This document shows, piece after piece, positions 3,880 to 43,530 of a stretch of DNA of 64,000 nucleotides. The notes under the pieces were generated by a model. The model saw only the letters and a list, made by a program, of their open reading frames with translations, made no database searches and was not told the origin of the DNA. Both the position numbers and the translations under genes were made by a program. The stretch is taken from the sequence record PV231354.1; one strand, given 5' to 3'. How positions within the stretch are numbered: position 1 is the first letter of the stretch; every line of letters starts with the position of its first letter.

Positions 3880-3934
3880 AACTCCTCTATGTCGTCGTCT
3901 CGACCCTTCTAGGTGGAGGTTCCCGTTCTGTCAA
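3880..3934 (-). promoter_or_regulatory. sigma70-type promoter with CGACGACA leader
   Basis: TTGACA(3934-3929)-N17-TAGAAG, then CGACGACATAGAGGAG. Confidence 0.8.
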
Positions 3935-3952
3935 CACACAACCGCCAACGAG

Positions 3953-3987
3953 GCAAAAAGAAACCGCCGACCCGAAGGCCGGCGGTT
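3953..3987 (-). terminator. intrinsic terminator
   Basis: AACCGCCG/CGGCGGTT GC stem around a TTCG loop, followed by TCTTTTT on the minus strand. Confidence 0.8.
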
Positions 3988-4007
3988 GGGAGGTGTGGGC
4001 TCGGGAA

Positions 4008-5867
4008 CTAGACGTCGAGGATGAAGAAGCGCTCGCTGGACGGGCCGTCGACCTCGACGATGAAGCCCGCCTCCAGCAGCGCCTCGATCGCCTTGCCGGT
4101 GTGGTAGAGCGACAGGTCGGACGCTTCGCTGATCCGGGCCAGCGAGAAGCCGACGTTCTGACCAACCTTGAGGTCTTGCAGCGACAGTTCGTTCAGGGTG
4201 GTGATCACCGCCCCGGCCGGGGCCAGTTCATACGCGCCTTCGAAGTCGCGATCCTCCGACAGACGCACGAGGCCTTCCTGCTCGATATTGTCGAGCAGCG
4301 AGGCCAGGAACTCGGGATCGACGAAGCCGACGTGGCTGCGGATTTCGCTCAGGTAGGCCGGGCCGTCGACGTCGACGGCGTTGAGGACCGCCAGCAGGGC
4401 GATGCCCGGCATGACCGCCACGACTTGCTCGGCCTTCTCCTCCTCGGAGATGTCGATCGGCACGCCCCCGCCGTTCGACAGAGGCACGATGGCTTCGTCC
4501 GGATGCAGGAGGATGAAGTCCTTGATCGCCCGCAGCGCCGCCAGGAAATGGTCCTTGGGGATTTCGTCGAGCTTGAAGGTGATGCGATCGTCGATGCCCA
4601 TGGGATAGAGCGCCCGCAGATTGGCGACGATGTCCTCGGGCCACGCGGCGAGCACCGTGTCCCAGAGAACCTTGGGCATCTGGAAGGCCCCGAAAGACAG
4701 GAACTGGTCGGGGGTGGCGGCTTCGACCGCAGCGATGGACTCGTCGATGCTGGCGGGCGTGTAGCCGCCCACGACGCCGTTTTGCGTCGCGTGGAGCACC
4801 TCGGCGGCTTCCTCGGCGCTCAGCCCCGTGATGACCTTTTCCACGCCCTCCTCGGGCTCCTGGAGCGGCTCCAGGGTCTTGAGGCGATCGCTCAGGCCCT
4901 GGATCGACTCGTAGGCGTCGGTCGTGTCGACGGCGAGCTTCAGGGTCAGGCGCTCGGGGCGGGCGCTGAACTCCTCGCCCGTGATGGTGTAGACGCCCTC
5001 GCGCTCCAGGATTTCCAGGTTCAGGAAGCGCCCCGTGTCGTTGAGGGCGCGGAAGCGCGCGTAGAGCATGTCCTGCTCAGTCAGATCGGTGAAGATGCCC
5101 TTGTCGAGCGCGAACAGCAGTTCGCTGCTGGAGAGGGTCTGCTCGCCCATGCCGGAGACCTCCTCGGGCTGGTCCTTCGTGAACCTCAGGCCCGGCCCGG
5201 TGGTCTCGGTTTCTTGAGGGATGATGGGGTCTTCGATCACGGGGGCTTTCTCCTTGAAAACGATGGAGGTCAGTTCGCTCAGCGAGACCGACCAGTTGGT
5301 GTCGACCTGGGCGGCGTAGCGGCCCGACATGGGGTTCCAGGCGACCTTGCCGATCTCGCCGCTGACCATCTTGTCCTCCCAGGCCGAGCGGAACATCACG
5401 TCGGCGCCGCCGAAGTAGTCCGTCAGGTGGCCCGCGAAGGTCTCGATGTCCTCGCGGGACGCCGGGCGCACCTCGCGCAGCGGGTAGGAATGGTGGACGC
5501 CGGGGCGCGCGTCTTCGATCTCGACGAAGATCGGCCCGTGGTCGGTGTGGAAGCGCTCGGTGTAGCCGATCATCTCGCCTTGCGGGGTCATGACCATCAC
5601 CGGCAGGGCCGAGAACTTGTGGTTCAGGCGGTCCACGTAGTCGCTGGGATAGGCGGTGGTGGTGTAGATGAGGTTGTCGCCCCGGCGCACGCCGCTGTAG
5701 TCGACGACGCAGAGCGGCGTGGCCACCGCACCGCTCGGGAAGCGCGGCCGATCAACGAACACTTGCCCGTCCGCCACCGGCGGGGAGACGCCGTGAACGT
5801 AGGGGACCACCTCGCTGTAGGTGGCGATCCAGGCGGGCTTGACCCGGTCAAGGAAGGTTTCGGTCAA
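4008..5867 (-). CDS. large acidic hypothetical protein, possible C-terminal winged helices
   Basis: 619 aa; LARISEASDLSLYHTGKAIEALLEAGFI is HTH-like. Confidence 0.75.
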   Translation of the reverse strand: MTETFLDRVKPAWIATYSEVVPYVHGVSPPVADGQVFVDRPRFPSGAVATPLCVVDYSGVRRGDNLIYTTTAYPSDYVDRLNHKFSALPVMVMTPQGEMIGYTERFHTDHGPIFVEIEDARPGVHHSYPLREVRPASREDIETFAGHLTDYFGGADVMFRSAWEDKMVSGEIGKVAWNPMSGRYAAQVDTNWSVSLSELTSIVFKEKAPVIEDPIIPQETETTGPGLRFTKDQPEEVSGMGEQTLSSSELLFALDKGIFTDLTEQDMLYARFRALNDTGRFLNLEILEREGVYTITGEEFSARPERLTLKLAVDTTDAYESIQGLSDRLKTLEPLQEPEEGVEKVITGLSAEEAAEVLHATQNGVVGGYTPASIDESIAAVEAATPDQFLSFGAFQMPKVLWDTVLAAWPEDIVANLRALYPMGIDDRITFKLDEIPKDHFLAALRAIKDFILLHPDEAIVPLSNGGGVPIDISEEEKAEQVVAVMPGIALLAVLNAVDVDGPAYLSEIRSHVGFVDPEFLASLLDNIEQEGLVRLSEDRDFEGAYELAPAGAVITTLNELSLQDLKVGQNVGFSLARISEASDLSLYHTGKAIEALLEAGFIVEVDGPSSERFFILDV

Positions 5868-5876
5868 GGCGGTCCC

Positions 5877-6341
5877 CTATTCGTTTGGAATGACGGACGC
5901 CGGGGCGTCCAGGTCGAAATTCTCGCCCTCATCGGTGAGGGCGAAGGTGGCGTAGCCGTCAGGGCTCTTGACCATGGTCAGCAGCTTGATCAGGCCGTGC
6001 TTCTCCAGCGCCTGGGCGGCGGGATAGTCGGCGTGCTTGTAGAAGACGTTGAGTTGCCCGCCTCGGCCCAGGATGCGCACGCTGCGCAGCAGCATGGCCT
6101 CCTGTTCGCTCAGCCCCAGCGCGCCCTTGATCCGCACGCGGGCGAGATGGACGTCGATCACGTGCGTCTGGCCCTGGTGCTCGAACTCGATGATCGCCAG
6201 CGGGCCGAACGATCCGTTGGTCACCGCCAGGACGACGCCCTCGAACTCGGTCGTTTTCCGCGCCGTGATGGGCACATAGTAGTCGAAGAAGACCGTCTTG
6301 CCCTTCATCACGTGGTGGGCCTGGGGCGCGACCGTGCTCAT
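5877..6341 (-). CDS. hypothetical protein with C-terminal wHTH-like motif
   Basis: ALEKHGLIKL...FALTDEG. Confidence 0.7.
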   Translation of the reverse strand: MSTVAPQAHHVMKGKTVFFDYYVPITARKTTEFEGVVLAVTNGSFGPLAIIEFEHQGQTHVIDVHLARVRIKGALGLSEQEAMLLRSVRILGRGGQLNVFYKHADYPAAQALEKHGLIKLLTMVKSPDGYATFALTDEGENFDLDAPASVIPNE

Positions 6342-6589
6342 GCCGTGGGGTCCTTCTTGCGGGCGGTGTAGTGGAACTCGTCGTGCATGCGCCCGTCCAG
6401 GGTGACCTCGTAGCCGGGACCCAGTTCAGCCAGGATGCGCGCCTCGATCTCGGAGAAGTCGATGTTGGCCATTGCGCGCTCGGCCGCCGCCGCCTGCTCC
6501 AGGAAGCTGCTCCTGATCTTGGCGCCGGCCTCGGTGCGGATCGGGATGTTCTGGATGGGCGGCTCGGACTTGGACAGACGCTCGCTCAT
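6338..6589 (-). CDS. 83-aa family-A DNA polymerase palm-like mini-protein
   Basis: RLSKSEPPIQNIPIRTEAGAKIRSSF, DFSEIEARILA and MHDEF resemble PolA motifs; start overlaps the gcrA stop. Confidence 0.75.
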   Translation of the reverse strand: MSERLSKSEPPIQNIPIRTEAGAKIRSSFLEQAAAAERAMANIDFSEIEARILAELGPGYEVTLDGRMHDEFHYTARKKDPTA

Positions 6590-7137
6590 CAGGCCCTCTT
6601 GATCTTGCCGACGTGCGAGGGGCGCGTGGCGGCCTTGTAGACGAACGGGCGATAGGCCACGCGGTGGTGCTCGATGCAGTAGACGCCCTGCTCGGTGCGG
6701 CACCCGCAATGGCCGAAGTTCTGGTCGGTCGGATCGCCGTAGGGCCAGCGGCACATGCCGCGCGTCAGCTTCAGCGTCGGGACCACGGTCTCGGGGCGCA
6801 CCGGGATCGGCGCCTGACCCTCGGGGACCAGTTCGATCTTCGGCTTCGACGGCTTCTCGGCCTTGGGCTTGGTGACCTTCTTGGGCTTGGCGACCTTGAC
6901 CTTCTTGATCTGGATGCCGTAGCCGCGCGTCTTCTTGCGGCGCTCCTGGAGCGGCAGGACCTTCTCGCCCAGTTCGCCCTTCTGGCGCAGGCGATCGCCC
7001 ATGCCGCAGACGGCGCTCTTGCTGCGCGGCTCGCTCAGCATTTCCCCGATCTGCTTGGTCCCGACAGGCTCTGCCCAGAGCTTCTTCAGCAGGGCGATGT
7101 CCTCGGCCAGCCAATCCGACTTACGCTTCTTCACCAC
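6589..7137 (-). CDS. gcrA: GcrA cell-cycle regulator homologue
   Basis: N-terminal W..EDIALLKKLW...QIGEML...SKSAVCG...RL; C-terminal L...MCRWPYGDP...FGHCG...YCIEH. Confidence 0.9.
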   Translation of the reverse strand: MVKKRKSDWLAEDIALLKKLWAEPVGTKQIGEMLSEPRSKSAVCGMGDRLRQKGELGEKVLPLQERRKKTRGYGIQIKKVKVAKPKKVTKPKAEKPSKPKIELVPEGQAPIPVRPETVVPTLKLTRGMCRWPYGDPTDQNFGHCGCRTEQGVYCIEHHRVAYRPFVYKAATRPSHVGKIKRA

Positions 7138-7333: not shown

Positions 7334-7383
7334 CGCTCCTCGATTTTCGCCGGCACCCTAGAGGAGCGCCGATGTGTTGACAA
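7334..7383 (-). promoter_or_regulatory. leftward sigma70-type promoter
   Basis: TTGTCA(7383-7378)-N17-TAGGGT(7360-7355). Confidence 0.6.
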
Positions 7384-7410
7384 GCGCCAAATGGCTCTGG
7401 CTGGCGAGTG

Positions 7411-7463
7411 TTGACAAGGCGGCGGTGGTCCCTTAGAAGGGCGGCGACGACAACGAAAGGAGG
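7411..7463 (+). promoter_or_regulatory. sigma70-type promoter + CGACGACAACG leader + SD
   Basis: TTGACA-N17-TAGAAG; motif at 7445. Confidence 0.85.
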
Positions 7464-7468
7464 CGCCG

Positions 7469-7768
7469 ATGCGCTACGTTCTGGAGTACATGGACTGCGA
7501 CGACCAGATCGTCCAGGTCGACTTCGAAGCCCCCACCCGCGCCTCGGCGATCGCCAAGGCCAAGCGCCTCTTCGTGAAGGCGGTCGAGGCCAGCGGCCGG
7601 TCGATCTTCACCGGCTACATGTTCGAGGACCACTCGATCACCATGAAGGTGAAGCTGGTCCCGTTCGGCACCCTGAGCCGCTACCTGGGCCTGGGCAAGG
7701 TCACCGCCGCTAACATCTCGTTCGACGACCGCGACGCCAAGATCGCCCGCCAGGACATGGCCGCATGA
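7469..7768 (+). CDS. hypothetical protein
   Basis: AGGAGG SD. Confidence 0.8.
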   Translation: MRYVLEYMDCDDQIVQVDFEAPTRASAIAKAKRLFVKAVEASGRSIFTGYMFEDHSITMKVKLVPFGTLSRYLGLGKVTAANISFDDRDAKIARQDMAA

Positions 7769-9173: not shown

Positions 9174-9362
9174 GTGACCAACGAGGAGATCACCTTCGCG
9201 GGCCTGATCAAGGCCATGGAGGACGCCCGCCGTGAAGCCCGCGCGGTGGGCGATCTCCTCAAGGCCGCCGAGATCGACGGCTGGTTCAAGGAGCACGCCC
9301 GGATCATCCGGGTGATCCGCGACAAGGCCGAGGCCGAAGAATTCGACAATCCGTTGGCGTGA
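9174..9362 (+). CDS. hypothetical protein
   Basis: ORF in operon. Confidence 0.7.
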   Translation: MTNEEITFAGLIKAMEDARREARAVGDLLKAAEIDGWFKEHARIIRVIRDKAEAEEFDNPLA

Positions 9363-9367
9363 GAGTG

Positions 9368-9420
9368 TTGACAGTCTCGCCGCGCCCGGCTACAAGCCTC
9401 CTCGACGACAACGCAAGGAG
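9368..9420 (+). promoter_or_regulatory. sigma70-type promoter + conserved leader
   Basis: TTGACA-N17-TACAAG; CGACGACAACG at 9403. Confidence 0.8.
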
Positions 9421-9426
9421 CCTGTC

Positions 9427-10590
9427 TTGACCGATTTCCCGATCATCCGCGCCGCCATTGAAGGCCGCCGCGCCGCTGGTTTCGACACCGTCCTGGCCAA
9501 CGCCGACGCCTTCGCTGCCGAGGGCGTGCTGATCAAGGCCGAGTTCGAGGACATCAAGGGCGTCTTCAGCCGCTGCCTCTCCGACGCCTGGGAAGTCGTG
9601 CGCAAGCGCCACTTCTTCATCGACCACGCCCTGCGCTCCAAGGAAGTCGAGGACCTCTTCTGGAGCTTCTCGATCCCCTATCCGCACGTCATGCCGGGCT
9701 TCCTGAAGAAGACCCTGGCGGCCAAGAACATCCCGGCCAACGTCCGCGAAGACCTCGTGGCCCTGTTCAACGAGGGCATCGCCCTCAACGACAAGCTGGT
9801 GGCACTCAAGCCTCTGATCGGCAAGCGCGCGCCCAAGAAGACCAAGGTCGAGATCGAGCGCGAGGGCAAGGAACGCACCTGCCAAATCTGCGGTCGCGGC
9901 ATCCTGGCCGAGGGCGGCATCATCGCCCACCACGGCTACACCCGCCCCTACGAGGGCTGGCAGACCGCCTCCTGCTCTGGCGCCCGCGAGGTTCCGTTCG
10001 AACTGAGCCGCGACGAACTGGGCAAAGAGATCGCCGCCCTGAAGGCGTGGCGCGTGCGCAAGGTGAACGAGCGCGCGGCGATCGAAGCCGAGACCGTCAA
10101 GCTGATCCTGAAGTATCAGGTCTCCGAGCAGGACCCGCGCAAGGCGCAGGGCTTCAAGCTGACCGTCGATCGCCAGATCGAAGTCACCCGCGACACCTTC
10201 GAGGCCCTGAAGGTCTCCACGCCCGAGGCCTTCTCGGGCAAGTACAACCCCCGCAAGGAGGGCAAGTACACCTACGAGGCCCTGACCTTCGACGGCCTGA
10301 AAGAGCAGGCCCTGGGCATGGTCGACATCGAGATCGGCCGCCTGGACAACGACATCCTGCGCCAGCAGGCCCGCTATGACGCCTGGAGCCAGAAGGCGAT
10401 CTTCGCCAAGGGCCGCTATTGGTTCATCGGTGATGAGGTCCAGACCGCCGACGGCGCGGTGGGCAGCATCAAGGGCTTCTACCAGCACTATCCGCCGCAG
10501 CCGGGCGACGTCGCGGGCGGCGTGCGTCTCGGGGCCGAGACCAGCGGTTTCGTCTCCTGGAACGTCGAGAGCCTGGAGCCGGTGGCCTGA
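9427..10590 (+). CDS. hypothetical protein with a possible Zn-binding C-x2-C/H/C motif
   Basis: 387 aa; TCQICGR...HHGY...SC. Confidence 0.8.
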   Translation: MTDFPIIRAAIEGRRAAGFDTVLANADAFAAEGVLIKAEFEDIKGVFSRCLSDAWEVVRKRHFFIDHALRSKEVEDLFWSFSIPYPHVMPGFLKKTLAAKNIPANVREDLVALFNEGIALNDKLVALKPLIGKRAPKKTKVEIEREGKERTCQICGRGILAEGGIIAHHGYTRPYEGWQTASCSGAREVPFELSRDELGKEIAALKAWRVRKVNERAAIEAETVKLILKYQVSEQDPRKAQGFKLTVDRQIEVTRDTFEALKVSTPEAFSGKYNPRKEGKYTYEALTFDGLKEQALGMVDIEIGRLDNDILRQQARYDAWSQKAIFAKGRYWFIGDEVQTADGAVGSIKGFYQHYPPQPGDVAGGVRLGAETSGFVSWNVESLEPVA

Positions 10591-12443: not shown

Positions 12444-12457
12444 TTGGCGTTAGAGTG

Positions 12458-12513
12458 TTGACAGTCATTGGGGCCTCCTCTATATCCACCCTCGACGACA
12501 ACGAGGAGGCCCC
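12458..12513 (+). promoter_or_regulatory. sigma70-type promoter + conserved leader
   Basis: TTGACA-N17-TATATC; motif at 12493; 11-bp inverted repeat 12470-80/12503-13. Confidence 0.85.
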
Positions 12514-12514
12514 G

Positions 12515-14263
12515 ATGACGACCGAGACCATGACCCTGAGCTTCCGTATCGAAGGCGCCGCCCTGGTGGAGCGCGCCCGCGACCGGGTCATCGAAGGCGC
12601 CTGGGAGCATGGCCTGCGCATCCTCGTCGAGGGTCTGCACGGCATGACCTACGAGATCGCCATCGACATCCTGATGGGCAAGTACACCCTGGGCGGCTGG
12701 TCCTCGGACCCCGAGGGCGTCTACCTCACCGAGCAAGACCCCGAGGACGAGACCTTCAAGCGCTACAAGGAGACGTTCGACTTCCAGTTCGCCGGCGTCT
12801 TCAAGGACGAGACGGGCCGCATCATGCGCCCCTACGCCATCGTCGACAGCTACGGCAAGAAGGACTTCGACTCCAAGTACCGCTACGACCACGCCCGCGC
12901 GCGCGGCTCGGACGAGTTCCTGTCGCGCCCGGTGCGCTACCACGACATCCTGGGCAAGGACCCGATCGACTGGGCCTATCGCGCCCTGCATTACGCCAAC
13001 CTGCCGCAGCAAGACATCGTCAAGCGGGTCAAGAACCCCGGCGAATACCACGGCACGATCCAGGAGATGGCCGCGCTATTCGAGGTCATCCACGACTACC
13101 CCAAGCTCCTGCTGCCCTACGTCACCAACAGCGCCCAGGAGGCCGTCGACAAAGCGGTCGCCTCCGGCCGCCGGATGGAGAAGCGCGGCTATGTCCACGA
13201 GTACGGCCCCAATGATCCGTTCGCTGAGTTCCACGCCGTGACGACCACGGCGATCGACAACTTGCCGCCCCAGTGGGTGATCGAGAACCAAGCCTATGAG
13301 CCCCCGGCGCCGGTCAAGGCCCTGGAGGACTTCAAGCAGGGCGTCGCGAGCGCCCCTGATGAGGTCTCGGCGATGAACCGGATGATCGTCAAGGAGGTCA
13401 ACGCCGGCACGAGCATGTCGACCGCCATCGCCCTGGCCCGCGCCAAGATGGCGCTGATGGGTGGCATGGCCGAGGACCCTGAAGAGCGCATGTCGGCGAT
13501 TAACGCCCACTTGGCGGCGGAGGCCGAGCGCGCCGAAGGCAAGTCCAACGAGACCTACCGCAAGGCGATCCAGGAGCAGGCCGCCGGCGACTACTTCGAT
13601 CTCGTGTACACGGGTAAGGGTGGCGAGGAGGTGACCCTGAAGGTCCCGACCGCGCCGTTCGAGAAGTGGTGCCTGTGGCGCACCGCCGGCGCTCACCTCG
13701 CCAAGCCGTGGAAGCGCGTCACCTATTCGGGTCTGAAGTGCTTCGGCGACGACCCCTATCACACCGACTGGGTCATCGGCGCGGGCCTGGAGCCCGAGGA
13801 TTGGCCGACCCGCAGCGACGACCCGCTGCACAAGGCCGCCTGGGACAAGCGCTTCGAGGTCGCCCAGAGCAAGATGGGCGGCAATCTGGTGGTCCTGCTG
13901 GGCACGGGCTTCGTGACCGGCAAGATCAAGCACCTCAAGCCGGGCGAGACCCTGGAGCGGGGGCAGATCGGCGTGATCCGCAACGCTGGCCCCGACTACG
14001 TCCAGGCCGCCGTCAGCGCGATCGACAACAACGCCGCCCTGATCACCGAGAACGGCGGCAACGTCGCCCACCTCGTCACCGAGTTCCGGGACAAGCCGCT
14101 GCGTCTGGTGCGCATCGCCGACGCCCGCAAGATTTTCAAGGACGGCATGGAGGTCGACCTCGACCTGGATAAGGCATGGCGCCGTATCTACGAAGGCTCG
14201 CGCGGTCCCGCGCCGGGTGACCTCTACCTGCCGCCGGAATGGGAGATTCAAGATGACGCATGA
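12515..14263 (+). CDS. protein with C-terminal PEP-utiliser phosphohistidine swivel domain
   Basis: GQIGVIRNAGPDY...ALITENGGNVAHLVTEFR...FKDGMEVDLD; start reassigned to the ATG after the SD. Confidence 0.8.
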   Translation: MTTETMTLSFRIEGAALVERARDRVIEGAWEHGLRILVEGLHGMTYEIAIDILMGKYTLGGWSSDPEGVYLTEQDPEDETFKRYKETFDFQFAGVFKDETGRIMRPYAIVDSYGKKDFDSKYRYDHARARGSDEFLSRPVRYHDILGKDPIDWAYRALHYANLPQQDIVKRVKNPGEYHGTIQEMAALFEVIHDYPKLLLPYVTNSAQEAVDKAVASGRRMEKRGYVHEYGPNDPFAEFHAVTTTAIDNLPPQWVIENQAYEPPAPVKALEDFKQGVASAPDEVSAMNRMIVKEVNAGTSMSTAIALARAKMALMGGMAEDPEERMSAINAHLAAEAERAEGKSNETYRKAIQEQAAGDYFDLVYTGKGGEEVTLKVPTAPFEKWCLWRTAGAHLAKPWKRVTYSGLKCFGDDPYHTDWVIGAGLEPEDWPTRSDDPLHKAAWDKRFEVAQSKMGGNLVVLLGTGFVTGKIKHLKPGETLERGQIGVIRNAGPDYVQAAVSAIDNNAALITENGGNVAHLVTEFRDKPLRLVRIADARKIFKDGMEVDLDLDKAWRRIYEGSRGPAPGDLYLPPEWEIQDDA

Positions 14264-16014: not shown

Positions 16015-16238
16015 TCGACTACGTCTACCGCAAAGACCCGCGCGGCAGCGACTACGGCGCCCAGCGGATGGACCTGAGTGAAGCCCTGGCGGTGGTCGCG
16101 GCCGAGAAGCAGGACTTCCTCATTCGCTTGGTCGAGGTCCTGCACGAGAACAACCTCCTGCGCGACGCCGACGTGCTGGAGTTGCTCGGCAAGGGCTGGG
16201 GCCTGGAGGCCTACGACGTCCTGTACGTAGACGATTGA
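16011..16238 (+). CDS. hypothetical protein
   Basis: GTGA overlap. Confidence 0.7.
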   Translation: MIDYVYRKDPRGSDYGAQRMDLSEALAVVAAEKQDFLIRLVEVLHENNLLRDADVLELLGKGWGLEAYDVLYVDD

Positions 16239-16290
16239 CAACACTCTCGCGCCAGCATAGAAGCCTTCTCGACGACAACGAAGGAGGCTT
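16235..16290 (+). promoter_or_regulatory. sigma70-type promoter + conserved leader
   Basis: TTGACA-N17-TAGAAG; motif at 16270. Confidence 0.85.
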
Positions 16291-16292
16291 CC

Positions 16293-16664
16293 GTGAAGCT
16301 CGCGACCCAAGACCGGACCGATCCCCGCCTGAACGCCGACTACCGCCTGATCAAGGCGGTCTTCTACTACGGCGGCCCGGCCGAGTACCCGATCCACCTG
16401 GACGAACGCTGGAGTGCGGTGACGCCGGCCCAGGTCGAGGACCAGATTTCGGTCCTCTGCCGCGACCTCGCCAAATGCGCGGGCAACACCCTGGCGCCGG
16501 CGACCTTCTACGAGCGCGCCAAGCTGAGCTTCGCCGAGGTGCCGCCGGTGTCCGACGAGTTCTGGGGCCTGATCTCCGAGACCACCAAGCAGAACATCCT
16601 CGCCCTGAAGGATCGCTTCACCGTCCACGGCAGCGGCTTCATGCTCTCGTGGGCCAAGGTCTGA
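16293..16664 (+). CDS. hypothetical protein
   Basis: AGGAGG SD. Confidence 0.8.
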   Translation: MKLATQDRTDPRLNADYRLIKAVFYYGGPAEYPIHLDERWSAVTPAQVEDQISVLCRDLAKCAGNTLAPATFYERAKLSFAEVPPVSDEFWGLISETTKQNILALKDRFTVHGSGFMLSWAKV

Positions 16665-17704: not shown

Positions 17705-17721
17705 TCCTTGGCCGTCTTGTG

Positions 17722-17775
17722 TTGACAAAGGCAGGTTCGCCGGCCTAGAACGTCATCGACGACAACAAAGGAGGC
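17722..17775 (+). promoter_or_regulatory. sigma70-type promoter + conserved leader
   Basis: TTGACA-N18-TAGAAC; CGACGACAACAAAGGAGG. Confidence 0.8.
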
Positions 17776-17778
17776 CCC

Positions 17779-18135
17779 ATGCCGCTGTATGATTTCCCGA
17801 CCGGCCCGACCACGATGGAAGACATCGAAGCGTTCGTCGCCGGCGCCCAGGCGGTGGTCAACGCCCAGATGGCGAAGACCTTCCCGAACGTGAGCCCGCC
17901 GGTCCTGACGATCGAGCCGGTGCGCGCCAACAGCCAGTTCGCCAAGATCGTGGCAAGCGACCGCGCCCAGCGCTCGGTCTGGGCGTTCGTTCGCCTGGAG
18001 AACGGCCTGATCTACAAGCCTTCCTCCTGGAAGGTCCCGGCCAAGCACGCGCGCGGCACCATCCACTCCGCTGGCCACGGCGCCGAGTACGTCGACTGGA
18101 CCGGCCCGCGCTACATCAAGGACATGCGCCCGTGA
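17779..18135 (+). CDS. conserved phage hypothetical protein
   Basis: SVWAFV...GLIYKPSSWKVPAKHARG. Confidence 0.8.
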   Translation: MPLYDFPTGPTTMEDIEAFVAGAQAVVNAQMAKTFPNVSPPVLTIEPVRANSQFAKIVASDRAQRSVWAFVRLENGLIYKPSSWKVPAKHARGTIHSAGHGAEYVDWTGPRYIKDMRP

Positions 18136-25802: not shown

Positions 25803-25855
25803 TTGACAGGCCCAGTCCGGTTCTGTAGACCTCTGCTCGACGACAACGAGGAGGC
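25803..25855 (+). promoter_or_regulatory. sigma70-type promoter + conserved leader
   Basis: TTGACA-N17-TAGACC; motif at 25838. Confidence 0.85.
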
Positions 25856-25859
25856 CCCC

Positions 25860-29173: not shown

Positions 29174-29230
29174 TTGACAACACTCTAACGCCAACATAGA
29201 AGGGCCTCCGACGACAACGCCGGAGGCCCT
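29174..29230 (+). promoter_or_regulatory. sigma70-type promoter + conserved leader hairpin
   Basis: TTGACA-N17-TAGAAG; AGGGCCTCCG/CGGAGGCCCT 10-bp stem. Confidence 0.85.
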
Positions 29231-29234
29231 TTTC

Positions 29235-30524: not shown

Positions 30525-30544
30525 ACTTTGTTGGCGCGAGAGTG

Positions 30545-30598
30545 TTGACAGCAGCGTCCTGACGCCATAGAACCCTCTCGACGACAACGAAGGAGGCC
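30545..30598 (+). promoter_or_regulatory. sigma70-type promoter + conserved leader
   Basis: TTGACA-N17-TAGAAC; motif at 30579. Confidence 0.85.
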
Positions 30599-30601
30599 CC
30601 G

Positions 30602-30988
30602 ATGGGCGCGCAACTGGAAATCAAGGAAGTCTTCGCCGCCTCGCAGGACGCCGTCTATTCCTGGCGTGGCGAGGAAGGTGACGAGTACCGCGTGATGAGC
30701 CTCGTCCACGTCCAGACGATGGACGGCCGCTGGTTCCTGATGCCGGCCATGCGCCCCTACTCGGACGTCGAGCGCTTCGACTTCGAGATGGCCTGCGAGG
30801 GCGAGCCCCTGTTCGGCATGGCGACCGTCTACTGGGACGCCGAAGCCTTCGCCGCCAAGGTCCGCGCGCGCGGCGTGATCCGCCCGGAGTTCTGGGTCGA
30901 GTATCAGCCCGACACCCGCACGACCGAGCAGCGCTTCGAGGACATGTGGATCGAAGAGCAGTACGACCGCATGGGGTACGCCGCATGA
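30602..30988 (+). CDS. hypothetical protein
   Basis: ATG after the SD. Confidence 0.8.
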   Translation: MGAQLEIKEVFAASQDAVYSWRGEEGDEYRVMSLVHVQTMDGRWFLMPAMRPYSDVERFDFEMACEGEPLFGMATVYWDAEAFAAKVRARGVIRPEFWVEYQPDTRTTEQRFEDMWIEEQYDRMGYAA

Positions 30989-32666: not shown

Positions 32667-32998
32667 CCGACTATGACGCCTGCCTGACCAACTGGGTCAT
32701 CTGCCTGACGCCGATCCCGGTCATCGTCCGGGGCGACGCCGTGCCCGAGCCGGGCGTGGTGCTCGTCGGCGAGATCATGCAGGACCGCAAGAAGCGCTGG
32801 CCGGACGGGCGTCTCGTCCACACCTCGGTGCTTCTGAGCGCGCGGGAGTTGATCAAGCCGGGCGAGGTCGTGCGCACCCTGCGCAGCCACTACCTCCTGG
32901 GCCGACCCGCCGAGGAGATCACCCTGCGCCATAGCCTGGGCGCGATGTTCGCCCAGGTCGTCATTCAACCGCTTGACAACACTCTCGCGCCAACCTAG
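32663..32998 (+). CDS. hypothetical protein
   Basis: GTGA overlap. Confidence 0.7.
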   Translation: MTDYDACLTNWVICLTPIPVIVRGDAVPEPGVVLVGEIMQDRKKRWPDGRLVHTSVLLSARELIKPGEVVRTLRSHYLLGRPAEEITLRHSLGAMFAQVVIQPLDNTLAPT

Positions 32999-33060
32999 AA
33001 GGGTCGTCGACGACAACGCCTGTCCGAAATTTGTACACAGATTTCGGACATAATAGGAGG
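32973..33060 (+). promoter_or_regulatory. sigma70-type promoter + leader with an extra hairpin
   Basis: TTGACA-N17-TAGAAG; motif at 33008; TGTCCGAAAT/ATTTCGGACA inverted repeat. Confidence 0.85.
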
Positions 33061-33065
33061 TCCAG

Positions 33066-33497
33066 ATGTCCTACACCGAAGCCCACATGGAAGCGCTGGT
33101 CGCCTTCCACCAGAACGAGATGGACGTCGGCGACGGCGCCTGGGGGCGCTACGTCAAGACGCTGGAGCAGCGCACCGGGATCGAAGACCTGGACGGCGAC
33201 AACTCCGAAGAGGCCCGCGCCTACTTCTGCGACATGGGCTACTCGCTCGACGACACCTTCGACATGTTCCAGAAGGGCGTGTCGCTGGCCGACGCCGAGA
33301 CCGCGATCCTGCGTTCGTGCTATGAGGCCGCCACCCGCGCGGCGCTCGCCGGCGTCAAGGGCCTGACCGAGGCCCAGGAGCGCGCCCAGGCGGCCGGCAA
33401 GACCGACTATGTCGCGCAACTTCAGAAGCAGATCGACAGCCTGATCGACGGCGAGAGCGCCGAGGCCTCGGCGGTCGAACGCGCGGCGGGGTGCTGA
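33066..33497 (+). CDS. hypothetical protein
   Basis: AGGAGG SD. Confidence 0.8.
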   Translation: MSYTEAHMEALVAFHQNEMDVGDGAWGRYVKTLEQRTGIEDLDGDNSEEARAYFCDMGYSLDDTFDMFQKGVSLADAETAILRSCYEAATRAALAGVKGLTEAQERAQAAGKTDYVAQLQKQIDSLIDGESAEASAVERAAGC

Positions 33498-35433: not shown

Positions 35434-35450
35434 GCCTTGGCTGCGATGTG

Positions 35451-35503
35451 TTGACAAGGCTGCGCGGCCTCCTGTAGAAGACCCTCGACGACAACAGGAG
35501 GCC
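35451..35503 (+). promoter_or_regulatory. sigma70-type promoter + conserved leader
   Basis: TTGACA-N18-TAGAAG; inverted repeat GGCCTCCTGT/ACAGGAGGCC. Confidence 0.85.
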
Positions 35504-35506
35504 CTC

Positions 35507-35989
35507 ATGCCTGACAACTCGAACTTCGACGCCGCCGTCCTCGTGGGCGTGGAGATCATCAAGACCAAGCCGGAAGGGCTGACCGCCCTGGAGGCCGTCC
35601 AGCGGTTCCAGCACCAGTCGCCGGACTTCGTCGACCTCGTCACCCGCTTCAACAAGCTGACGGCCGCCTTGCCGGCGGTGGTCAACGGCCATCACCTCCA
35701 GTCGACCTGCGCCGAGTGGGTCCTCAACGAGTCCCAGCAGCGCATCACGCTGCCGTTCGAGACCATCGCCCAGCGCGTGGAATTCTACGCCCAGCAGATG
35801 ACGATCCCGGCCTACGGCTACCTGATGGATCGCTACAAGGAAAACCTCGACAGCAAGATCGCCACGGTGCGCGGCTGTCTGACGGACCAGAACTATCTCG
35901 GGGCCAGCTACAACCTCCTCGACCTGGAGGAGACCTTCCAGGAGATGGTCGACCGTCACGACGATCTGGTCTCGGACGGCTACCCCTGA
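35507..35989 (+). CDS. hypothetical protein
   Basis: ATG after the SD. Confidence 0.8.
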   Translation: MPDNSNFDAAVLVGVEIIKTKPEGLTALEAVQRFQHQSPDFVDLVTRFNKLTAALPAVVNGHHLQSTCAEWVLNESQQRITLPFETIAQRVEFYAQQMTIPAYGYLMDRYKENLDSKIATVRGCLTDQNYLGASYNLLDLEETFQEMVDRHDDLVSDGYP

Positions 35990-36332: not shown

Positions 36333-36857
36333 ATGGGCCTGACGGGGTGCAGCTTTGCGCTCCTGACGGCCGGCTCGGTCGCCTTCGCGGTTGACCGTGG
36401 GGGCAGGGCGCTCAAGGCGAGCGGCCTGCTCCTCCTGGCGACCTGGGCGTTCTCGGTGACCGTCGGCAAGGTGCTGGTCGCCGCCTACAAGCCCTACATC
36501 TACGCCTGGGTCGACGGCATGTTCGCCGGCGCCATGGGCGTCATGATCTCCGCCCGCTACCAGCGCTGGCGCGCCGGGCTCTTCGCCCTGGCGATCCTCC
36601 AGATGGGGCTCCATCTGGCCATGCTCGGCTACTGGGATTTCACCCTGGCGGCCCGCCGGCTGCACGTGCTGTCGCTCAACATCACCTACGCCCTGGAACT
36701 CTTCGTGCTCACGATCGGCGCGGTGGTCTACCGCCCTGGCGCGGACGACGATATGCCGGTGATCATGGAGGTCCAGCACCACCTCGTGGGGCAGGACGAC
36801 GGCACGCTGCTCGATTGGCTTGAGTGTGTTGACAAAGCCGGACGGCCCGTCCTATAA
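36333..36857 (+). CDS. multi-pass (~5 TM) membrane protein
   Basis: Several ~20-aa hydrophobic segments. Confidence 0.75.
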   Translation: MGLTGCSFALLTAGSVAFAVDRGGRALKASGLLLLATWAFSVTVGKVLVAAYKPYIYAWVDGMFAGAMGVMISARYQRWRAGLFALAILQMGLHLAMLGYWDFTLAARRLHVLSLNITYALELFVLTIGAVVYRPGADDDMPVIMEVQHHLVGQDDGTLLDWLECVDKAGRPVL

Positions 36858-36882
36858 CCCCCTCGACGACAACGAGGAGGCC
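36829..36882 (+). promoter_or_regulatory. sigma70-type promoter + conserved leader
   Basis: TTGACA-N18-TATAAC; motif at 36864. Confidence 0.85.
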
Positions 36883-36885
36883 CCC

Positions 36886-37314
36886 ATGCCGCAGCCCAAG
36901 ACCGCCACGATCTCCCGCGCGCTCGCCTACTTGGCGATCACGGGCGGCACCAACTGCCTCACGATCAACACCCGGATCGCCCTGCACCCCTATCACAAGC
37001 TGGTCCCGGTCACGTACAAGATCGGTGACACCGAACTGACCCGCCACGTCTACAAGCTCACCGACGAGGGCCAAGCCCTGGCCGAGAAGAGCAAGCTCTG
37101 GAAGGGCCACCAGAAGCTCGTCGAGATGGGCTTCAAGTTCCAGGCGCGCCGGCGTCAGTCCTCGCGCTTCCTGTCCTACGATCACGCGACCGACGACTGC
37201 CGCAAGGATCGTCGCGGCGCGTTCATCTCCGGCGACAGCCCCTACGCCCAGCCGGCGCCGGGGCAGACGCCCGAGGGCAAGAAGGACTGGGACTACATCA
37301 AGGTGGAGGTCTAA
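36886..37314 (+). CDS. hypothetical protein
   Basis: Start reassigned to the ATG after the SD. Confidence 0.75.
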   Translation: MPQPKTATISRALAYLAITGGTNCLTINTRIALHPYHKLVPVTYKIGDTELTRHVYKLTDEGQALAEKSKLWKGHQKLVEMGFKFQARRRQSSRFLSYDHATDDCRKDRRGAFISGDSPYAQPAPGQTPEGKKDWDYIKVEV

Positions 37315-42166: not shown

Positions 42167-42447
42167 TGGCGAGGTCCCGTGTACGCGTCAGGATCACCCA
42201 GCTTCGCTACCTGGAGGTGCGTGCGAAACTCCAGCGCGGGCCGTGGAAGCATCTGATCCGCGCCTATCGCGGCTGGCGCTGCTACAATCCCGCCACCGGC
42301 ACGACCGATATGGCCGAGCGCTACAGCGACGACACGGTGCGGCGCATGGTCGCAAGCGGGACGCTGGACGTCCACGAGTTCGACGAGGACGGCGTGGTCC
42401 AGGTCTATCGCCTGGGCAAGGCCTTCGACGGCTGGAGGTCGTCATGA
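42166..42447 (+). CDS. wHTH-like array member
   Basis: MVASGTLDVHEFDEDGVVQVYRL. Confidence 0.7.
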   Translation: MARSRVRVRITQLRYLEVRAKLQRGPWKHLIRAYRGWRCYNPATGTTDMAERYSDDTVRRMVASGTLDVHEFDEDGVVQVYRLGKAFDGWRSS

Positions 42448-42797
42448 AGTACAAGTGGATGGCCAACCCCTACTACGCCCAGATAGGGTTCTCGCCCCAT
42501 CAGGCGCGCTACTGGGACGTCGAGAAAGCCATGGTCCTCAACCTGTGGGACGACATCGGCCGCGTCGGCGGGCTCGAAGACCCCAGCCACTGGAAGCTTG
42601 TCTGGAGGCCCTTGCAAGTGGGCCGCGAAGGGCGATATGTCCTGGTCACCGCCCAGGCTGGAATCGCCTACCCCATGGCGTACCCAAAGGGCTATCGCGG
42701 CGCGATCGTGGAGATCGCCGCCGATGAGGACTGCCGGCTGCGGCCGACGGTGCGGGACGAGACCGGGCGGATTCTGGAGTATCGGGGCGTCCAGTGA
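42444..42797 (+). CDS. wHTH-like array member
   Basis: LRPTVRDETGRILEYR. Confidence 0.7.
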   Translation: MKYKWMANPYYAQIGFSPHQARYWDVEKAMVLNLWDDIGRVGGLEDPSHWKLVWRPLQVGREGRYVLVTAQAGIAYPMAYPKGYRGAIVEIAADEDCRLRPTVRDETGRILEYRGVQ

Positions 42798-43417
42798 AGA
42801 GCGATTGGCGCGAGACCTTGGCGGCGGCGTTCGACCGGCCCCTCCCCGTGGAGGAGCCGGTGGCGGACCCCTATGCCTTCGATCCCAACGCGCCGCCGCT
42901 GATCCTCGACCTCACCCCGGACGAGAAGCTGTCGCTGACCGAGTACCGCTGGGCGGCGCTGGACGCGTCGGGCGCGGTCATGGGCGAATTCTGGGCGATC
43001 TCCCAGGCGGCCGAGGCGCTCGCCACCTTCCTCTACCCAGGCTTGGCCAGCTACGCGCGCGGCGGGCACACCGGCCGGCTCAAGGCCAACCGCCTGCGCC
43101 GGCTGAGCGAGGCCCAGAACTGGCGCTGCTGCTACTGCCATGGGCAGATGCGCATGCCCCACGACTGCGACGGCCCCAACGAGCCGGACATGGCGACGCT
43201 GGAGCACGTCACCCGCGTCACCGATGGCGGTGGTAGCACCTGGGACAACCTGATCGCCGCCTGCCAGACCTGCAACTCCCATCGCGGGAGCGTCATGCCC
43301 CTGAAGTGGTGGAAGCTGCGCCAGAAGCTCCTCCCCGATTGGCCGGCCTGCTCGCCGATCACCGACGCGGCCCGCTACGCCCTGCGCGGCTATGGGCTCT
43401 TGCGGCGCGGGTGGTGA
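42794..43417 (+). CDS. HNH endonuclease
   Basis: CCYC...TLEHV...GG...NLIAACQTCNSHRG. Confidence 0.88.
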   Translation: MKSDWRETLAAAFDRPLPVEEPVADPYAFDPNAPPLILDLTPDEKLSLTEYRWAALDASGAVMGEFWAISQAAEALATFLYPGLASYARGGHTGRLKANRLRRLSEAQNWRCCYCHGQMRMPHDCDGPNEPDMATLEHVTRVTDGGGSTWDNLIAACQTCNSHRGSVMPLKWWKLRQKLLPDWPACSPITDAARYALRGYGLLRRGW

Positions 43418-43463
43418 CAACCGTTTTTGGTTGTAAAGTGAGTTCACAACCTTTTTCGGTTGT
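43417..43463. promoter_or_regulatory. two 18-bp palindromic operator-like sites
   Basis: ACAACC-N6-GGTTGT at 43417-43434 and 43446-43463. Confidence 0.65.
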
Positions 43464-43475
43464 AGCGCGACTGTG

Positions 43476-43530
43476 TTGACGAGGTAACGAAAGCGGACTA
43501 AATGTAGGGCCTCGACGACAACGAAGGAGA
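43476..43530 (+). promoter_or_regulatory. sigma70-type promoter + conserved leader
   Basis: TTGACG-N17-TAAATG; motif at 43513. Confidence 0.75.

Follow-up and report, generated by a model that had tools for sequence, protein, structure and literature searches.

The window analysed here, a stretch of 64,000 nucleotides, covers the final 64 kb of the phiCbK-like Caulobacter phage RBC8. It carries fourteen promoters with a common 10-nt motif: thirteen exact copies of CGACGACAAC, found on the plus strand only, and a fourteenth on the minus strand (3897-3888), which is, as the first-pass annotation had noted, a variant, CGACGACATA. The general form is TTGAC(A/G), 17-18 bp, TA(G)AAN, 5-8 bp, CGACGACAAC, GGAGG and a start codon. 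As a cassette of about 75 bp, the order is a TGGC-N6-GTG block, TTGACA, 17-18 bp, TAGAAG, 5-6 bp, the motif, GGAGG and the start codon. An independent scan with the pattern TTGAC[AG]-N17/18-TA.A.. gave -35 boxes at exactly the coordinates of the first-pass annotation (3934 on the minus strand, 7411, 9368, 12458, 16235, 17722, 24362, 25803, 29174, 30545, 32973, 35451, 36829 and 43476), and copies are named below by these positions. The features are as follows (SD, Shine-Dalgarno sequence).

3874-3947, minus strand: variant cassette; TGGC-N6-GTG block, -35 TTGACA 3934-3929, -10 TAGAAG 3911-3906, CGACGACATA 3897-3888, SD GAGGAG, GTG 3876
3962-3987, minus strand: canonical intrinsic terminator; 11-bp stem and T-run
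7398-7471, plus strand: cassette; TGGC block, -35 7411, -10 TAGAAG 7434, motif 7445-7454, SD AGGAGG, ATG 7469
9355-9429, plus strand: cassette; -35 9368, -10 TACAAG 9391, motif 9403-9412, SD AAGGAG, TTG 9427
12445-12520, plus strand: cassette; -35 12458, -10 TATATC 12481, motif 12493-12502, ATG 12515
16235-16295, plus strand: shared-spacer cassette; -35 16235, -10 TAGAAG 16258, motif 16270-16279, GTG 16293
17709-17781, plus strand: cassette; -35 17722, 18-bp spacer, -10 TAGAAC 17746, motif 17757-17766, ATG 17779
24362-24421, plus strand: shared-spacer cassette; -35 24362, -10 TAGAAC 24385, motif 24397-24406, ATG 24419
24390-24414, plus strand: hairpin of the 24362 copy; CCCTCCTCG 24390-24398, loop ACGACAA, CGAGGAGGG 24406-24414
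25790-25862, plus strand: cassette; -35 25803, -10 TAGACC 25826, motif 25838-25847, ATG 25860
29174-29237, plus strand: shared-spacer cassette; -35 29174, motif 29209-29218 in a hairpin loop, ATG 29235
30532-30604, plus strand: cassette; -35 30545, -10 TAGAAC 30568, motif 30579-30588, ATG 30602
32973-33068, plus strand: shared-spacer cassette with long leader; -35 32973, -10 TAGAAG 32996, motif 33008-33017, 13-bp hairpin at about 33021-33050, SD AGGAGG, ATG 33066
35438-35512, plus strand: cassette; -35 35451, 18-bp spacer, -10 TAGAAG 35475, motif 35486-35495, ATG 35507
36816-36888, plus strand: cassette; -35 36829, -10 TATAAC 36853, motif 36864-36873, ATG 36886
43476-43539, plus strand: last cassette in the window; -35 TTGACG 43476, -10 TAAATG 43499, motif 43513-43522, ATG 43537

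The minus-strand cassette drives RBC8_226c-224c, which includes an XRE regulator (the tgrL orthologue), and an HTH_3 protein is encoded downstream of it (2221-2601, minus strand). The terminator at 3962-3987 ends the upstream leftward operon just before this promoter, and 3001-43000 holds no other strong terminator-like site. No plus-strand terminators were found in that region among the thirteen tandem promoters, and read-through between them is therefore expected. The first gene behind the 17722 promoter has a DUF7717 match, the 25803 cassette lies directly 3' of an HTH regulator gene (25398-25781), and the 43476 copy, where the gap between -10 and motif is 8 nt, has a hairpin and then a T-run just upstream. 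In published RNA-seq, the phiCbK tgrL (gp216) operon peaks by 15 min. As this operon stands behind a variant member of the promoter family, the assignment of the gene block as early by the first-pass annotation is supported.

The motif is far too frequent for chance, as about 0.1 exact copies per window are estimated from base composition. When one mismatch was allowed, 30 matches were found against 6.8 +/- 2.8 in shuffled sequences, none of 100 shuffles reaching 30. The remaining one-mismatch matches on the plus strand all lie within coding sequence, at Asp/Asn-type codons, and are chance matches. Across the whole of RBC8 the promoter pattern occurs 31 times, with ACGACA no more than 20 nt downstream in 21; all 21 fall in 116-203 kb of the record, where the family numbers at least 22 copies including the window's fourteen. 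The same motif is present in phiCbK, Karma, CcrBL10 and Rogue; the first-pass annotation had advised a search of relatives. The repeat is thus real and conserved in related phages, and the roles discussed below are predictions. No description of these promoters was found in the literature searched.

At orthologous promoters, RBC8 and phiCbK agree in about 100% of the motif but in 40-60% of the spacers, and phages of about 78% identity share the motif while its flanks drift. The earlier statement that spacers vary around a constant motif is borne out by these values, except that four copies share the spacer ACACTCTCGCGCCAAC. A core, (Y)GACGA, persists at the predicted +1 in Colossus and in a Brevundimonas phage; in Colossus GACGA lies at the 7th-8th nt after the -10, and ACGACA is present in Brevundimonas phage Domovoi. 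The continuation in Colossus differs (GACGATCA). These comparisons support selection that holds the motif while the spacers drift.

Another explanation for the repetition is that the motif is itself without function and belongs to a mobile promoter cassette, spread and homogenised by recombination, with the conserved ends GTGTTGACA and CGACGACAACGAGGAGG as mere homology for shuffling. In T4-type phages, cassettes of an early promoter and a stem-loop have reportedly been proposed to shuffle through homologous ends. A sub-family of four or five copies in RBC8 shares its whole spacer, the TGGC block also occurs inverted (within the spacer at 16235), and at 24362 the phiCbK orthologue has a wholly different promoter body and the same CCTCCTCGACGACAACGAGGAGG, a cassette swap between unchanged flanks. 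However, the conserved tract is only 10-20 bp and adjoins a variable discriminator and spacer, so gene conversion tracts would have to be implausibly short. The core is also kept across genera in which the -10 regions have diverged, and the pattern of conservation is that of purifying selection. We consider this explanation highly improbable.

The promoters are supported as being of the sigma70 type, and the 10-mer, as first described, has a constant position at the predicted start. Twelve copies have 5-6 nt between the -10 and the motif and two have 8 nt, where the first-pass annotation gave about 6-8 nt. The start is most likely the G at motif position 2, a purine that follows a pyrimidine and lies 7-8 nt beyond the -10. 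The motif would then occupy +1 to +9 in a 20-25-nt leader. A mapped start site for any phiCbK-like phage was not found in the literature searched, and +1 is therefore a prediction throughout. The predicted leader has no U, little structure and a strong SD at its end, and no T occurs until +19 to +25 in 12 of 13 leaders. GGAGG and the start codon follow 21-26 nt from the start of the motif in 13 of the 14 copies. The exception is 32973, which has a 57-nt structured leader instead, an arrangement also present in phiCbK. Because the motif adjoins the -10 even where the SD is 45 nt further on (32973, its phiCbK orthologue and two Colossus copies), it is anchored to the start site and not to the SD; it was never found before the SDs of internal genes.

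The best reading, to which we give somewhat less than an even chance, is that the motif acts in cis, as the initially transcribed sequence and 5' leader within an early-promoter cassette, combined with masking of the SD in read-through RNA. CGACGACAAC would be the first transcribed stretch of phage-specific early promoters read by the housekeeping RNA polymerase of the host, with sigma73 (the Caulobacter sigma70). It could fix the start site in cis, speed the exit of polymerase from a promoter that is probably limited by escape because it is near consensus, and keep the ribosome site open in the promoter's own RNA. Initially transcribed sequences have been reported to alter promoter output about 1000-fold, dependent on promoter context, and those that escape slowly have T and TG within the first 7 nt. 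The T-free leaders fit fast promoter escape.

Another possibility is that the motif is a sigma-dependent promoter-proximal pause element, in which sigma region 2 re-binds a -10-like GACAAC or GACGAC/GACGAT on the non-template strand, holding polymerase near +16 to +25 and allowing a Q-like antiterminator or the first ribosome to load. Its position tied to the start site and the long operons with no terminators between them would suit this, and the lambda pR' pause element, AACGAT at +1 to +6, resembles GACGAC and the GACGAT of Colossus. Scored with the family's own -10 matrix, GACAAC is in the top 3% of the hexamers of the window, and in the top 1% when position -12 is left out. However, the motif contains five overlapping hexamers, and one of these would reach the top 1-3% by chance in about 5-15% of cases. 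On the same matrix neither the cross-genus core GACGA (15th-21st percentile) nor the Colossus continuations are -10-like, and Q-type systems have one late promoter followed by a terminator, whereas there are about 23 early promoters here. The case for a -10-like pause is weak, and we think it very unlikely.

The first-pass annotation also described the motif as often being the loop of a hairpin with the SD in its 3' arm. This holds for read-through RNA and not for the promoter's own transcript, because the 5' arm is always in the -10, the discriminator or the spacer, upstream of the predicted +1. The prediction is accordingly that own RNA stays open and that folding is confined to read-through RNA. 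Own RNA from +1 to +45 is less structured than shuffled sequences (z > 0) in 20 of 22 copies, and the predicted probability that the SD is unpaired falls from 0.47 in own RNA to 0.20 in read-through RNA (p = 0.0014). The fall exceeds 0.3 at 11 of 20 promoter sites, against 7 of 41 control SDs. Pairing between the upstream sequence and the SD has z of about -8 against shuffles and -3.1 to -3.4 against swapped partners.

In four worked examples, read-through RNA had z between -3.8 and -7.0, and own RNA between 0 and +1.8. The 12458 copy forms a 17-bp helix between the promoter spacer (12464-12480) and the SD with the start codon (12503-12519), at -34.9 kcal/mol (z = -7.0, own RNA 0.0); its arms differ between RBC8 and phiCbK with the pairing kept (GGGGCCTCCTC/GAGGAGGCCCC vs GGGACTCCTCT/AGAGGAGTTCC). 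At 35451, GGCCTCCTGT (spacer and start of the -10) pairs with ACAGGAGGCC (z = -3.8, own RNA +0.7). Both hairpins quoted in the first-pass annotation lie where it placed them: that at 24390-24414 (z = -4.8, own RNA +0.8) and that at 29201-29230, in the 29174 copy (-27.6 kcal/mol, z = -6.9, own RNA +1.8). The latter is also terminator-like, as the stem of 29195-29210 with 29221-29233 is followed by TTTT at 29231-29234, and its phiCbK orthologue is annotated as a rho-independent terminator. In addition, GGGAACCTCC in the spacer of the 3934 copy pairs with GGAGTTCCC around the SD (-18.7 kcal/mol), GAAGCCTTCTCG pairs with CGAAGGAGGCTTC at 16235, and the predicted SD openness at 9368 is 0.72 in own RNA and 0.04, that is masked, in read-through RNA.

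The claim that the flanks pair in several copies is accurate for about half, where the hairpin is clear and strong; the rest have no clear hairpin, and SD pairing is weak at 30545. The motif is kept at 43476, 32973 and record position 143816 without any hairpin, and hairpins occur at promoters without the motif, so these are two separable features. Loop geometry also varies: in several read-through RNAs ACGACAA is predicted to form a 7-nt loop above a stem of 5-9 bp, and elsewhere the loop spans 19-26 nt or more and takes in the -10. Covariation of the stem, counted with the register fixed, lacks significance, its value being reached by 57 of 500 shuffles. The five inner pairs are invariant, and covariation among the outer ones is not significant. 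There is no preference for G-U pairs over A-C, and RNA-level selection on the stems is therefore not proven.

These observations bear on the proposal that the motif is an RNA signal of the nut/boxB or put type, read in the hairpin loop by a phage protein that modifies polymerase or switches translation. Such a signal could act only on read-through transcripts, re-arming at operon junctions, and would suit the expected read-through between tandem promoters and the 7-nt loops. The loop contains GACAA, the pentaloop of P22 boxB. However, the transcript that starts at the adjacent promoter itself lacks the 5' arm, the geometry is inconstant, motif and hairpin each occur without the other, the stem lacks significant outer covariation, and no Rfam family was matched anywhere in the window. 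By any feature that could be tested it is not a nut/boxB site, and this proposal has very little chance of being right.

In the cis-acting reading, the hairpins would be a second, separable layer. Sequence complementary to the SD is placed in the discriminator, -10 or spacer, ahead of +1, and the hairpin would fold only in RNA from a polymerase that had started at a promoter further upstream. In that RNA the SD would be masked, and where one of the few copies has a U-run, termination may follow. Against this layer, a strong hairpin is present in only about half of the copies and the covariation of the stems is not significant. Against the cis-acting role itself, ten invariant bases in about 20 copies exceed the known demands of polymerase contacts at +3 to +10. 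The strictness also exceeds that known of T7 or T4 early promoters, and a specific binding partner would produce it. Furthermore, the composite of promoter and motif is absent from all Caulobacterales genomes scanned; if this start is simply a preference of the polymerase, the host makes no use of it, at least with consensus hexamers. The different continuation in Colossus argues against a single universal optimum.

The main rival is that the motif is a docking site for a putative dedicated factor, of phage or host, on the DNA of +1 to +10 or on the 5'-terminal RNA. Such a factor would switch the whole early regulon at once, by shut-off after about 15 min, by activation, or by stabilising or destroying mRNA from the 5' end. 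The invariance of 10 nt in one fixed orientation and position, its conservation between phages with drifting flanks and the absence of the composite from the Caulobacterales scanned are as expected of it. Early transcript levels are highest by 15 min and fall afterwards, so some shut-off exists. A second conserved block, TGGC-N6-GTGTTGACA, lies over the -35 in either orientation, which would suit an occluding DNA-binding protein and hints at such a factor acting on these promoters. Candidate regulators in the same block are a GcrA-like protein, the XRE protein (TgrL orthologue) and an HTH protein, and Gill et al. suggested that a T5 A1-like protein of phiCbK possibly interacts with host RNA polymerase. 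However, the motif is asymmetric and, at 10 bp, short for a DNA-binding dimer; it is never found away from a start site, although precision of +/-1 nt is not required of a plain repressor site; and it is altered in Colossus without an obvious matching change that could be tested. The handle for a phage factor suggested in the first-pass annotation is neither supported nor excluded by our analysis, and we regard a dedicated factor as rather unlikely, but a serious contender.

An unrelated metagenomic phage contig has its own promoter family, with a different promoter body, in which CGAC(G)ACAAC stands directly before GGAGA; this speaks against a factor private to the lineage and may be a hint that leans towards a cis, host-directed role. 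The pattern resembles Cluster A stoperators and Cluster K start-associated sequences in mycobacteriophages, which would favour a dedicated factor. For the cis-acting reading, the initially transcribed sequence of T5 N25 is a precedent for the control of escape, and the T4 genes e, soc, 49 and I-TevI, in which a promoter lies inside an SD-masking hairpin, are a precedent for masking in read-through RNA.

Fourteen promoters in the window belong to one family, and a scan with the two hexamers alone returned exactly the -35 boxes listed in the first-pass annotation (3934(-), 7411, 9368, 12458, 16235, 17722, 24362, 25803, 29174, 30545, 32973, 35451, 36829 and 43476; copies are named here by these positions). 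The -35 is TTGAC(A/G) in 14/14 copies, the spacer is 17 bp in 11 and 18 bp in three, and the -10 is TA(G/T/C/A)A.., mostly (C)TAGAA(G/C), which are the hexamers and spacing of a host sigma70/sigma73-type promoter. Malakooti et al. in 1995 reportedly gave the Caulobacter promoter consensus as TTGACgS ... GCtANAWC. An E. coli-style promoter scan misses all 14 because it requires a T at the last -10 position.

The motif itself, CGACGACAAC, occurs in 13 exact copies in the window, every time on the + strand, while the fourteenth is a variant, CGACGACATA, on the - strand at 3897, as had been described for the 3934 copy. With one mismatch allowed there were 30 matches in the window against 6.8 +/- 2.8 in shuffles, the other + strand near-matches being in-frame Asp/Asn codons within genes. 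The gap between -10 and motif had been put at about 6-8 nt; it measures 8 nt in two copies and 5-6 nt in the other 12. The distance from -35 to motif is nearly constant, and from this geometry transcription is predicted to start at the G of CGAC, the 7th-8th nt after the -10. Downstream come GGAGG and a start codon, which is 21-26 nt past the motif start in all copies except 32973. The first genes behind the 14 promoters (e.g. 7469-7768, 9427-10590 and 12515-14263) resemble typical orphan early genes; a Pfam search of all 14 gave a single match, DUF7717 at 17779-18135, and no other functional clue.

Scanning the rest of the RBC8 record (PV231354.1, 223,270 bp, linear; window position = record position - 159,270) added eight copies, one on the + strand at record 116,795 and seven on the - strand at 136,743-158,846. 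The family therefore numbers at least 22 copies in RBC8, which cover record 116-203 kb and are directed away from a divergent point in window 3.9-7.4 kb. Away from promoters CGACGACAAC is found just three times in RBC8, all in coding sequence. The two-hexamer pattern matches 31 places in the genome, and at 21 of these ACGACA follows within 20 nt. The G+C content is 65% throughout the window.

The window forms the right-hand 64 kb of the genome of Caulobacter phage RBC8, to which an 8-kb piece of it is 100% identical. This piece has 92-98% identity to CcrRogue, BL64 and CcrBL10, and with phiCbK, Karma, Swift and Magneto the value is about 78%. The same promoter family is present in phiCbK, with 14 copies carrying CGACGACA and four degenerate ones. 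When 11 promoters of RBC8 are compared with their phiCbK orthologues, the motif shows ~100% identity and the spacers only 40-60%, so the earlier observation of variable spacers around a fixed motif holds across orthologues; within RBC8 it does not hold for four promoters (16235, 24362, 29174 and 32973), which have the spacer ACACTCTCGCGCCA in common. At 24362-24421 and its phiCbK counterpart, 178464-178525, the flanks are identical and the same CCTCCTCGACGACAACGAGGAGG is present, but the promoter bodies differ: the body is of the shared-spacer type in RBC8 and of the TGGC type (see below) at the orthologous position in phiCbK. On these alignments, promoter cassettes appear to be exchanged between phages as units.

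Matches to the family in IMG/VR were known phiCbK-like isolates and two metagenome contigs. Colossus has TTTCTTTACAAG as its -10 region and (C/T)GACGA(T/A)CA as its start region, and the Brevundimonas phage Domovoi has ACGACA at 3/5 promoters. The core common to these genera is GACGA preceded by a pyrimidine; the G next to the pyrimidine is the 7th-8th nt past the -10, which is the canonical start position. In a scan of one genome per species (185,579 species), the composite of promoter and motif gave 21 scattered single hits, against about 35 estimated by chance, and none in Caulobacterales; on this near-chance result, the composite is regarded as a phage feature. The motif family is thus real, bigger than first reported and under selection, and no earlier description of these promoters in RBC8 or phiCbK was found in the literature searched.

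The motif is anchored to the start site rather than to the SD. Where the SD is distant, as in 32973, its phiCbK orthologue and two Colossus promoters (locus positions 18249 and 21917), the motif still adjoins the -10, and it was never found ahead of the SDs of internal genes. The leader of 57 nt at 32973 contains, within window 33018-33065, a 13-bp hairpin of its own, TGTCCGAAATTTGT / ACAGATTTCGGACA, upstream of a free SD. This hairpin is conserved in phiCbK and CcrBL10, has no match in Rfam, and might serve RBC8_289 as a regulatory or stabilising RNA element.

TGGC-N6-GTGTTGACA forms a second conserved block, matched 13 times in the window against 0.02 expected. At nine promoters it lies forward, starting upstream of the -35 and taking in this hexamer. 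At the four shared-spacer promoters it is on the opposite strand and still overlaps the -35.

Matches to TGGC-N6-GTGTTGACA in the window
3929-3947(-), forward
7398-7416, forward
9355-9373, forward
12445-12463, forward
17709-17727, forward
25790-25808, forward
30532-30550, forward
35438-35456, forward
36816-36834, forward
16236-16254, inverted
24363-24381, inverted
29175-29193, inverted
32974-32992, inverted

The block's presence in both orientations suggests that a DNA-binding factor acts here or that an inversion took place. Two other explanations were rejected by eye: a sigma54 -24/-12 promoter (TGGC-N..-TTG) would need another spacing and a GC at -12, and an antisense promoter at the inverted block has no suitably spaced -10 in the two copies inspected.

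The strict invariance of the motif, its absence from the Caulobacterales genomes scanned and the presence of this second block at 13 promoters could all be explained if the motif were the docking site of a dedicated trans factor. The +1 to +10 block, possibly together with TGGC-N6-GTGTTGACA, would then be recognised by a putative phage or host factor, either as start-site DNA or as 5'-triphosphate RNA, and about 23 promoters, with well over 100 early and DNA-metabolism genes in phiCbK-like phages, would be switched on or off together. We regard this as rather unlikely.

A direct action of the ten bases on polymerase and ribosome, in cis, is a reading that we hold tentatively and place a little short of an even chance. 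In 12/13 copies there is no T in the leader before +19 to +25, and early T and TG (first 7 nt) in transcribed sequence have been reported to slow promoter escape. Output can vary about 1000-fold with the first 10 transcribed bases, depending on promoter context, and this dependence could result in one optimum per promoter type and another in Colossus. A repeated promoter on the - strand (2222-5518) of a metagenomic phage contig, IMGVR_UViG_3300036832_000737, consists of GACATCATTGAC...TATATCAT followed by CATCGAC(G)ACAAC-GGAGA, a leader very similar to that of RBC8, which was counted towards the cis role. The contig has 58% G+C and is not phiCbK-like, and its partial matches are mostly to phages of Alphaproteobacteria.

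Another possibility, which we consider weakly supported, is that the motif is a sigma-dependent pause element in the early transcribed non-template strand. Scored with the -10 matrix of the family itself, GACAAC is among the top 1-3% of window hexamers; however, the cross-genus core and the Colossus variants are not -10-like on that matrix, and the differences between the spacers of the copies are evidence against a common Q-binding element. A complementarity of the motif to 16S rRNA was dropped as an idea, since a match of 7 nt would be at chance level and inside a helix. The sequence fits none of the Hfq (ARN)n, CsrA GGA, rut or RNase E sites.

In many copies the SD region is predicted to pair with sequence upstream. 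The mean energy of this duplex in RBC8 is -15.4 kcal/mol; it rises to -10.6 when the upstream sequence is shuffled (z = -7.9) and to -13.5 when promoters exchange partners (z = -3.4), and phiCbK behaves likewise. As the energies beat both controls, the pairing is real and partly site-specific, and we consider the support for it to be moderate. At 12458, for example, the arms are GGGGCCTCCTC/GAGGAGGCCCC, and at its phiCbK counterpart GGGACTCCTCT/AGAGGAGTTCC. A fixed-register covariation test on the class ...CAACGAGGAGG... was not significant (57/500 shuffles reached the observed value), the inner pairs of this class being invariant and the outer ones frequently unpaired. Comparing G-U with A-C in the stems, as a means of telling sense-RNA from DNA-level pairing, gave no asymmetry at equal penalties and was uninformative.

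The 5' arm is within the discriminator and -10 in 24362, 29174 and 16235, and within the spacer in 12458, 35451 and 3934(-). All 5' arms found fall in -25 to +1 of the predicted start, the arm search having spanned only sequence upstream of +2. RNA initiated at the motif is therefore predicted to be unable to form the hairpin, because its 5' arm is upstream of +1. The motif had been presented as often forming a hairpin loop with the SD as 3' arm; such a hairpin is predicted for read-through RNA from an upstream promoter, but not for the promoter's own RNA. One of the proposals made with it, a nut/put-like antitermination signal, fails on the features tested, as the 5' arm precedes the predicted +1, loop length varies from 6 to more than 40 nt and there is no Rfam match, nothing in the window reaching the gathering threshold.

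The two kinds of RNA are also predicted to fold differently. The promoter's own RNAs are less structured than shuffles in 20/22 copies, which, on these models, would independently support the absence of the 5' arm. Across four worked pairs, the read-through RNA has z = -3.8 to -7.0 and the own RNA z = 0 to +1.8. The predicted probability that the SD is unpaired is 0.47 in the own RNA and 0.20 in the read-through RNA (p = 0.0014), a fall that exceeds 0.3 at 11/20 sites compared with 7/41 control SDs. The features of the T4 gene e type, a helix over the SD or start codon in the long transcript and an own RNA without the 5' arm, are thus both present at the level of prediction.

The terminator scan found no + strand terminator between the 13 tandem promoters, so read-through RNA is to be expected. 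Only two RBC8 copies, 29195-29234 and its twin at record 136,744, have a U-run after the hairpin and the look of a true terminator. The remaining copies have no U-run and none is reported by the scan as an intrinsic terminator; a G+C-rich stem-loop with a direct U-run is therefore not a general feature of the family. Such hairpins are annotated as terminators in phiCbK (including the orthologue of 29195-29234) and in Colossus.

Motif and hairpin are separable features. The motif is retained without a hairpin at 43476, 32973 and record 143,816, and upstream-SD pairing is seen at promoters lacking the motif, window ~7357-7385(-) and record 145351(-), which makes the hairpin independent of the motif. 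In these two, GCGCTCCTC in the spacer pairs with GAGGAGCGT, and CTCCATCA with TGATGGAG. In the unrelated Brevundimonas phage vB_BsubS-Delta (- strand, locus 11749), CATAAGGGCCTCCTGT-tcaacggc-ACAGGAGGCCCTTTTCATG forms a promoter-embedded SD hairpin with a U-run, and the motif is absent.

In published RNA-seq, 41% of phiCbK genes peak by 15 min, including tgrL (gp216). The tgrL operon of phiCbK begins at a variant member of the family (156,557-), and in RBC8 the orthologue of this promoter is 3934(-), which precedes the gene for an HTH_3 protein. By analogy with the tgrL operon, this suggests that the block belongs to the early class. Three regulators are encoded in the block.

Regulators encoded in the early block
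6589-7137, - strand, GcrA-like protein (PF07750, 8e-21)
2221-2601, - strand, XRE HTH_3 protein, orthologue of phiCbK TgrL
25398-25781, + strand, HTH/TrmB-like protein (weak match)

Directly 3' of the HTH/TrmB-like gene is a family promoter, as in Colossus. A further class of promoter-like sites has a GANTC methylation site directly beside the -35 (CGTGAATCTTGACAT).

Sites of the GANTC/-35 class
Window 48299-48345
RBC8 record 30898
RBC8 record ~56900
RBC8 record 118526

As this class is outside the early block, it may represent GcrA/CcrM-type middle or late promoters; RBC8 encodes its own GcrA homologue. Further to the right, a 910-aa ORF (window 51846-54578) matches the intein-containing large terminase of phiCbK in length and position. 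By analogy, the right terminal repeat should begin inside this ORF and run through ~54.6-64 kb to the window end, since the phiCbK repeat starts within the large terminase gene. Most of the terminator-like hairpins of the window cluster here, and CtrA-dependent promoters have been reported in the terminal repeat (PMC9437464).

The family provides a ready map of early transcription units in RBC8, phiCbK and their relatives, with about 22 units over roughly 90 kb; among these phages, phiCbK serves as the standard one for work on the Caulobacter cell cycle. It also offers compact sigma73 promoters with defined leaders, predicted to be very strong, for Caulobacter engineering. Two testable questions are raised: why a promoter for the host polymerase would need ten invariant transcribed bases, and why the ribosome site of the first gene would be masked, as predicted, in read-through RNA. 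If the motif is a factor-binding site, it would expose the switch ending early expression in phiCbK-like phages, and a virulent jumbo siphophage would have a start-site operator or 5'-end tag regulon.

From the sequence and predicted folds, the family would best be filed as phage early promoters with a conserved initially transcribed sequence and T4 e-type SD masking in read-through RNA. For the first of these features the closest likeness is T5 N25, in which a virulent phage also presents a near-consensus promoter to host RNA polymerase and the first 10-20 transcribed bases set productive output via promoter escape. The RBC8 leaders are T-free like fast-escaping sequences, and a role in escape is predicted here from sequence. 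Unlike N25, RBC8 repeats a nearly unchanged 10-mer at about 22 promoters, and across phage species; we know of no comparable identity of the start sequence among the early promoters of T5, T7 or T4. The lambda pR' pause element, AACGAT at +1 to +6, is likewise conserved in the first transcribed bases, and boxB of the lambda and P22 nut sites is a hairpin loop read by a phage protein. In RBC8, by contrast, the resemblance to a -10 is weak and not conserved across genera, the 5' arm of the hairpin is not transcribed from the adjacent promoter, and the motif is present in many copies, not in one or two.

Among repeated sites, the start-associated sequences (SAS/ESAS) of Cluster K mycobacteriophages are similar as short, asymmetric, one-orientation repeats at many non-structural genes, beside or including the SD, and like the RBC8 motif they are kept across sub-clusters and are not present in the host. 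However, the SAS includes the SD and, at many internal genes, lies 3-7 bp away from the start codon, whereas the RBC8 motif is confined to promoter starts. The stoperators of Cluster A mycobacteriophages (L5), a 13-bp asymmetric site with two to three dozen intergenic copies oriented with transcription, share the asymmetry and the single orientation; they are repressor sites of temperate phages and are not tied to start sites, while phiCbK-like phages are virulent.

For the second feature, the model is provided by the T4 genes e, soc, 49 and I-TevI, in which long upstream transcripts fold a helix over the SD or start codon, and a promoter within the 5' arm gives transcripts that lack the arm and are translated. 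RBC8 has the same geometry and the same folding contrast, known here from predicted folds. The inner promoter of T4 is late, which gives late-only timing, whereas the upstream and inner promoters of RBC8 are of the same early class, and the predicted masking device recurs at about half of the ~22 promoters.
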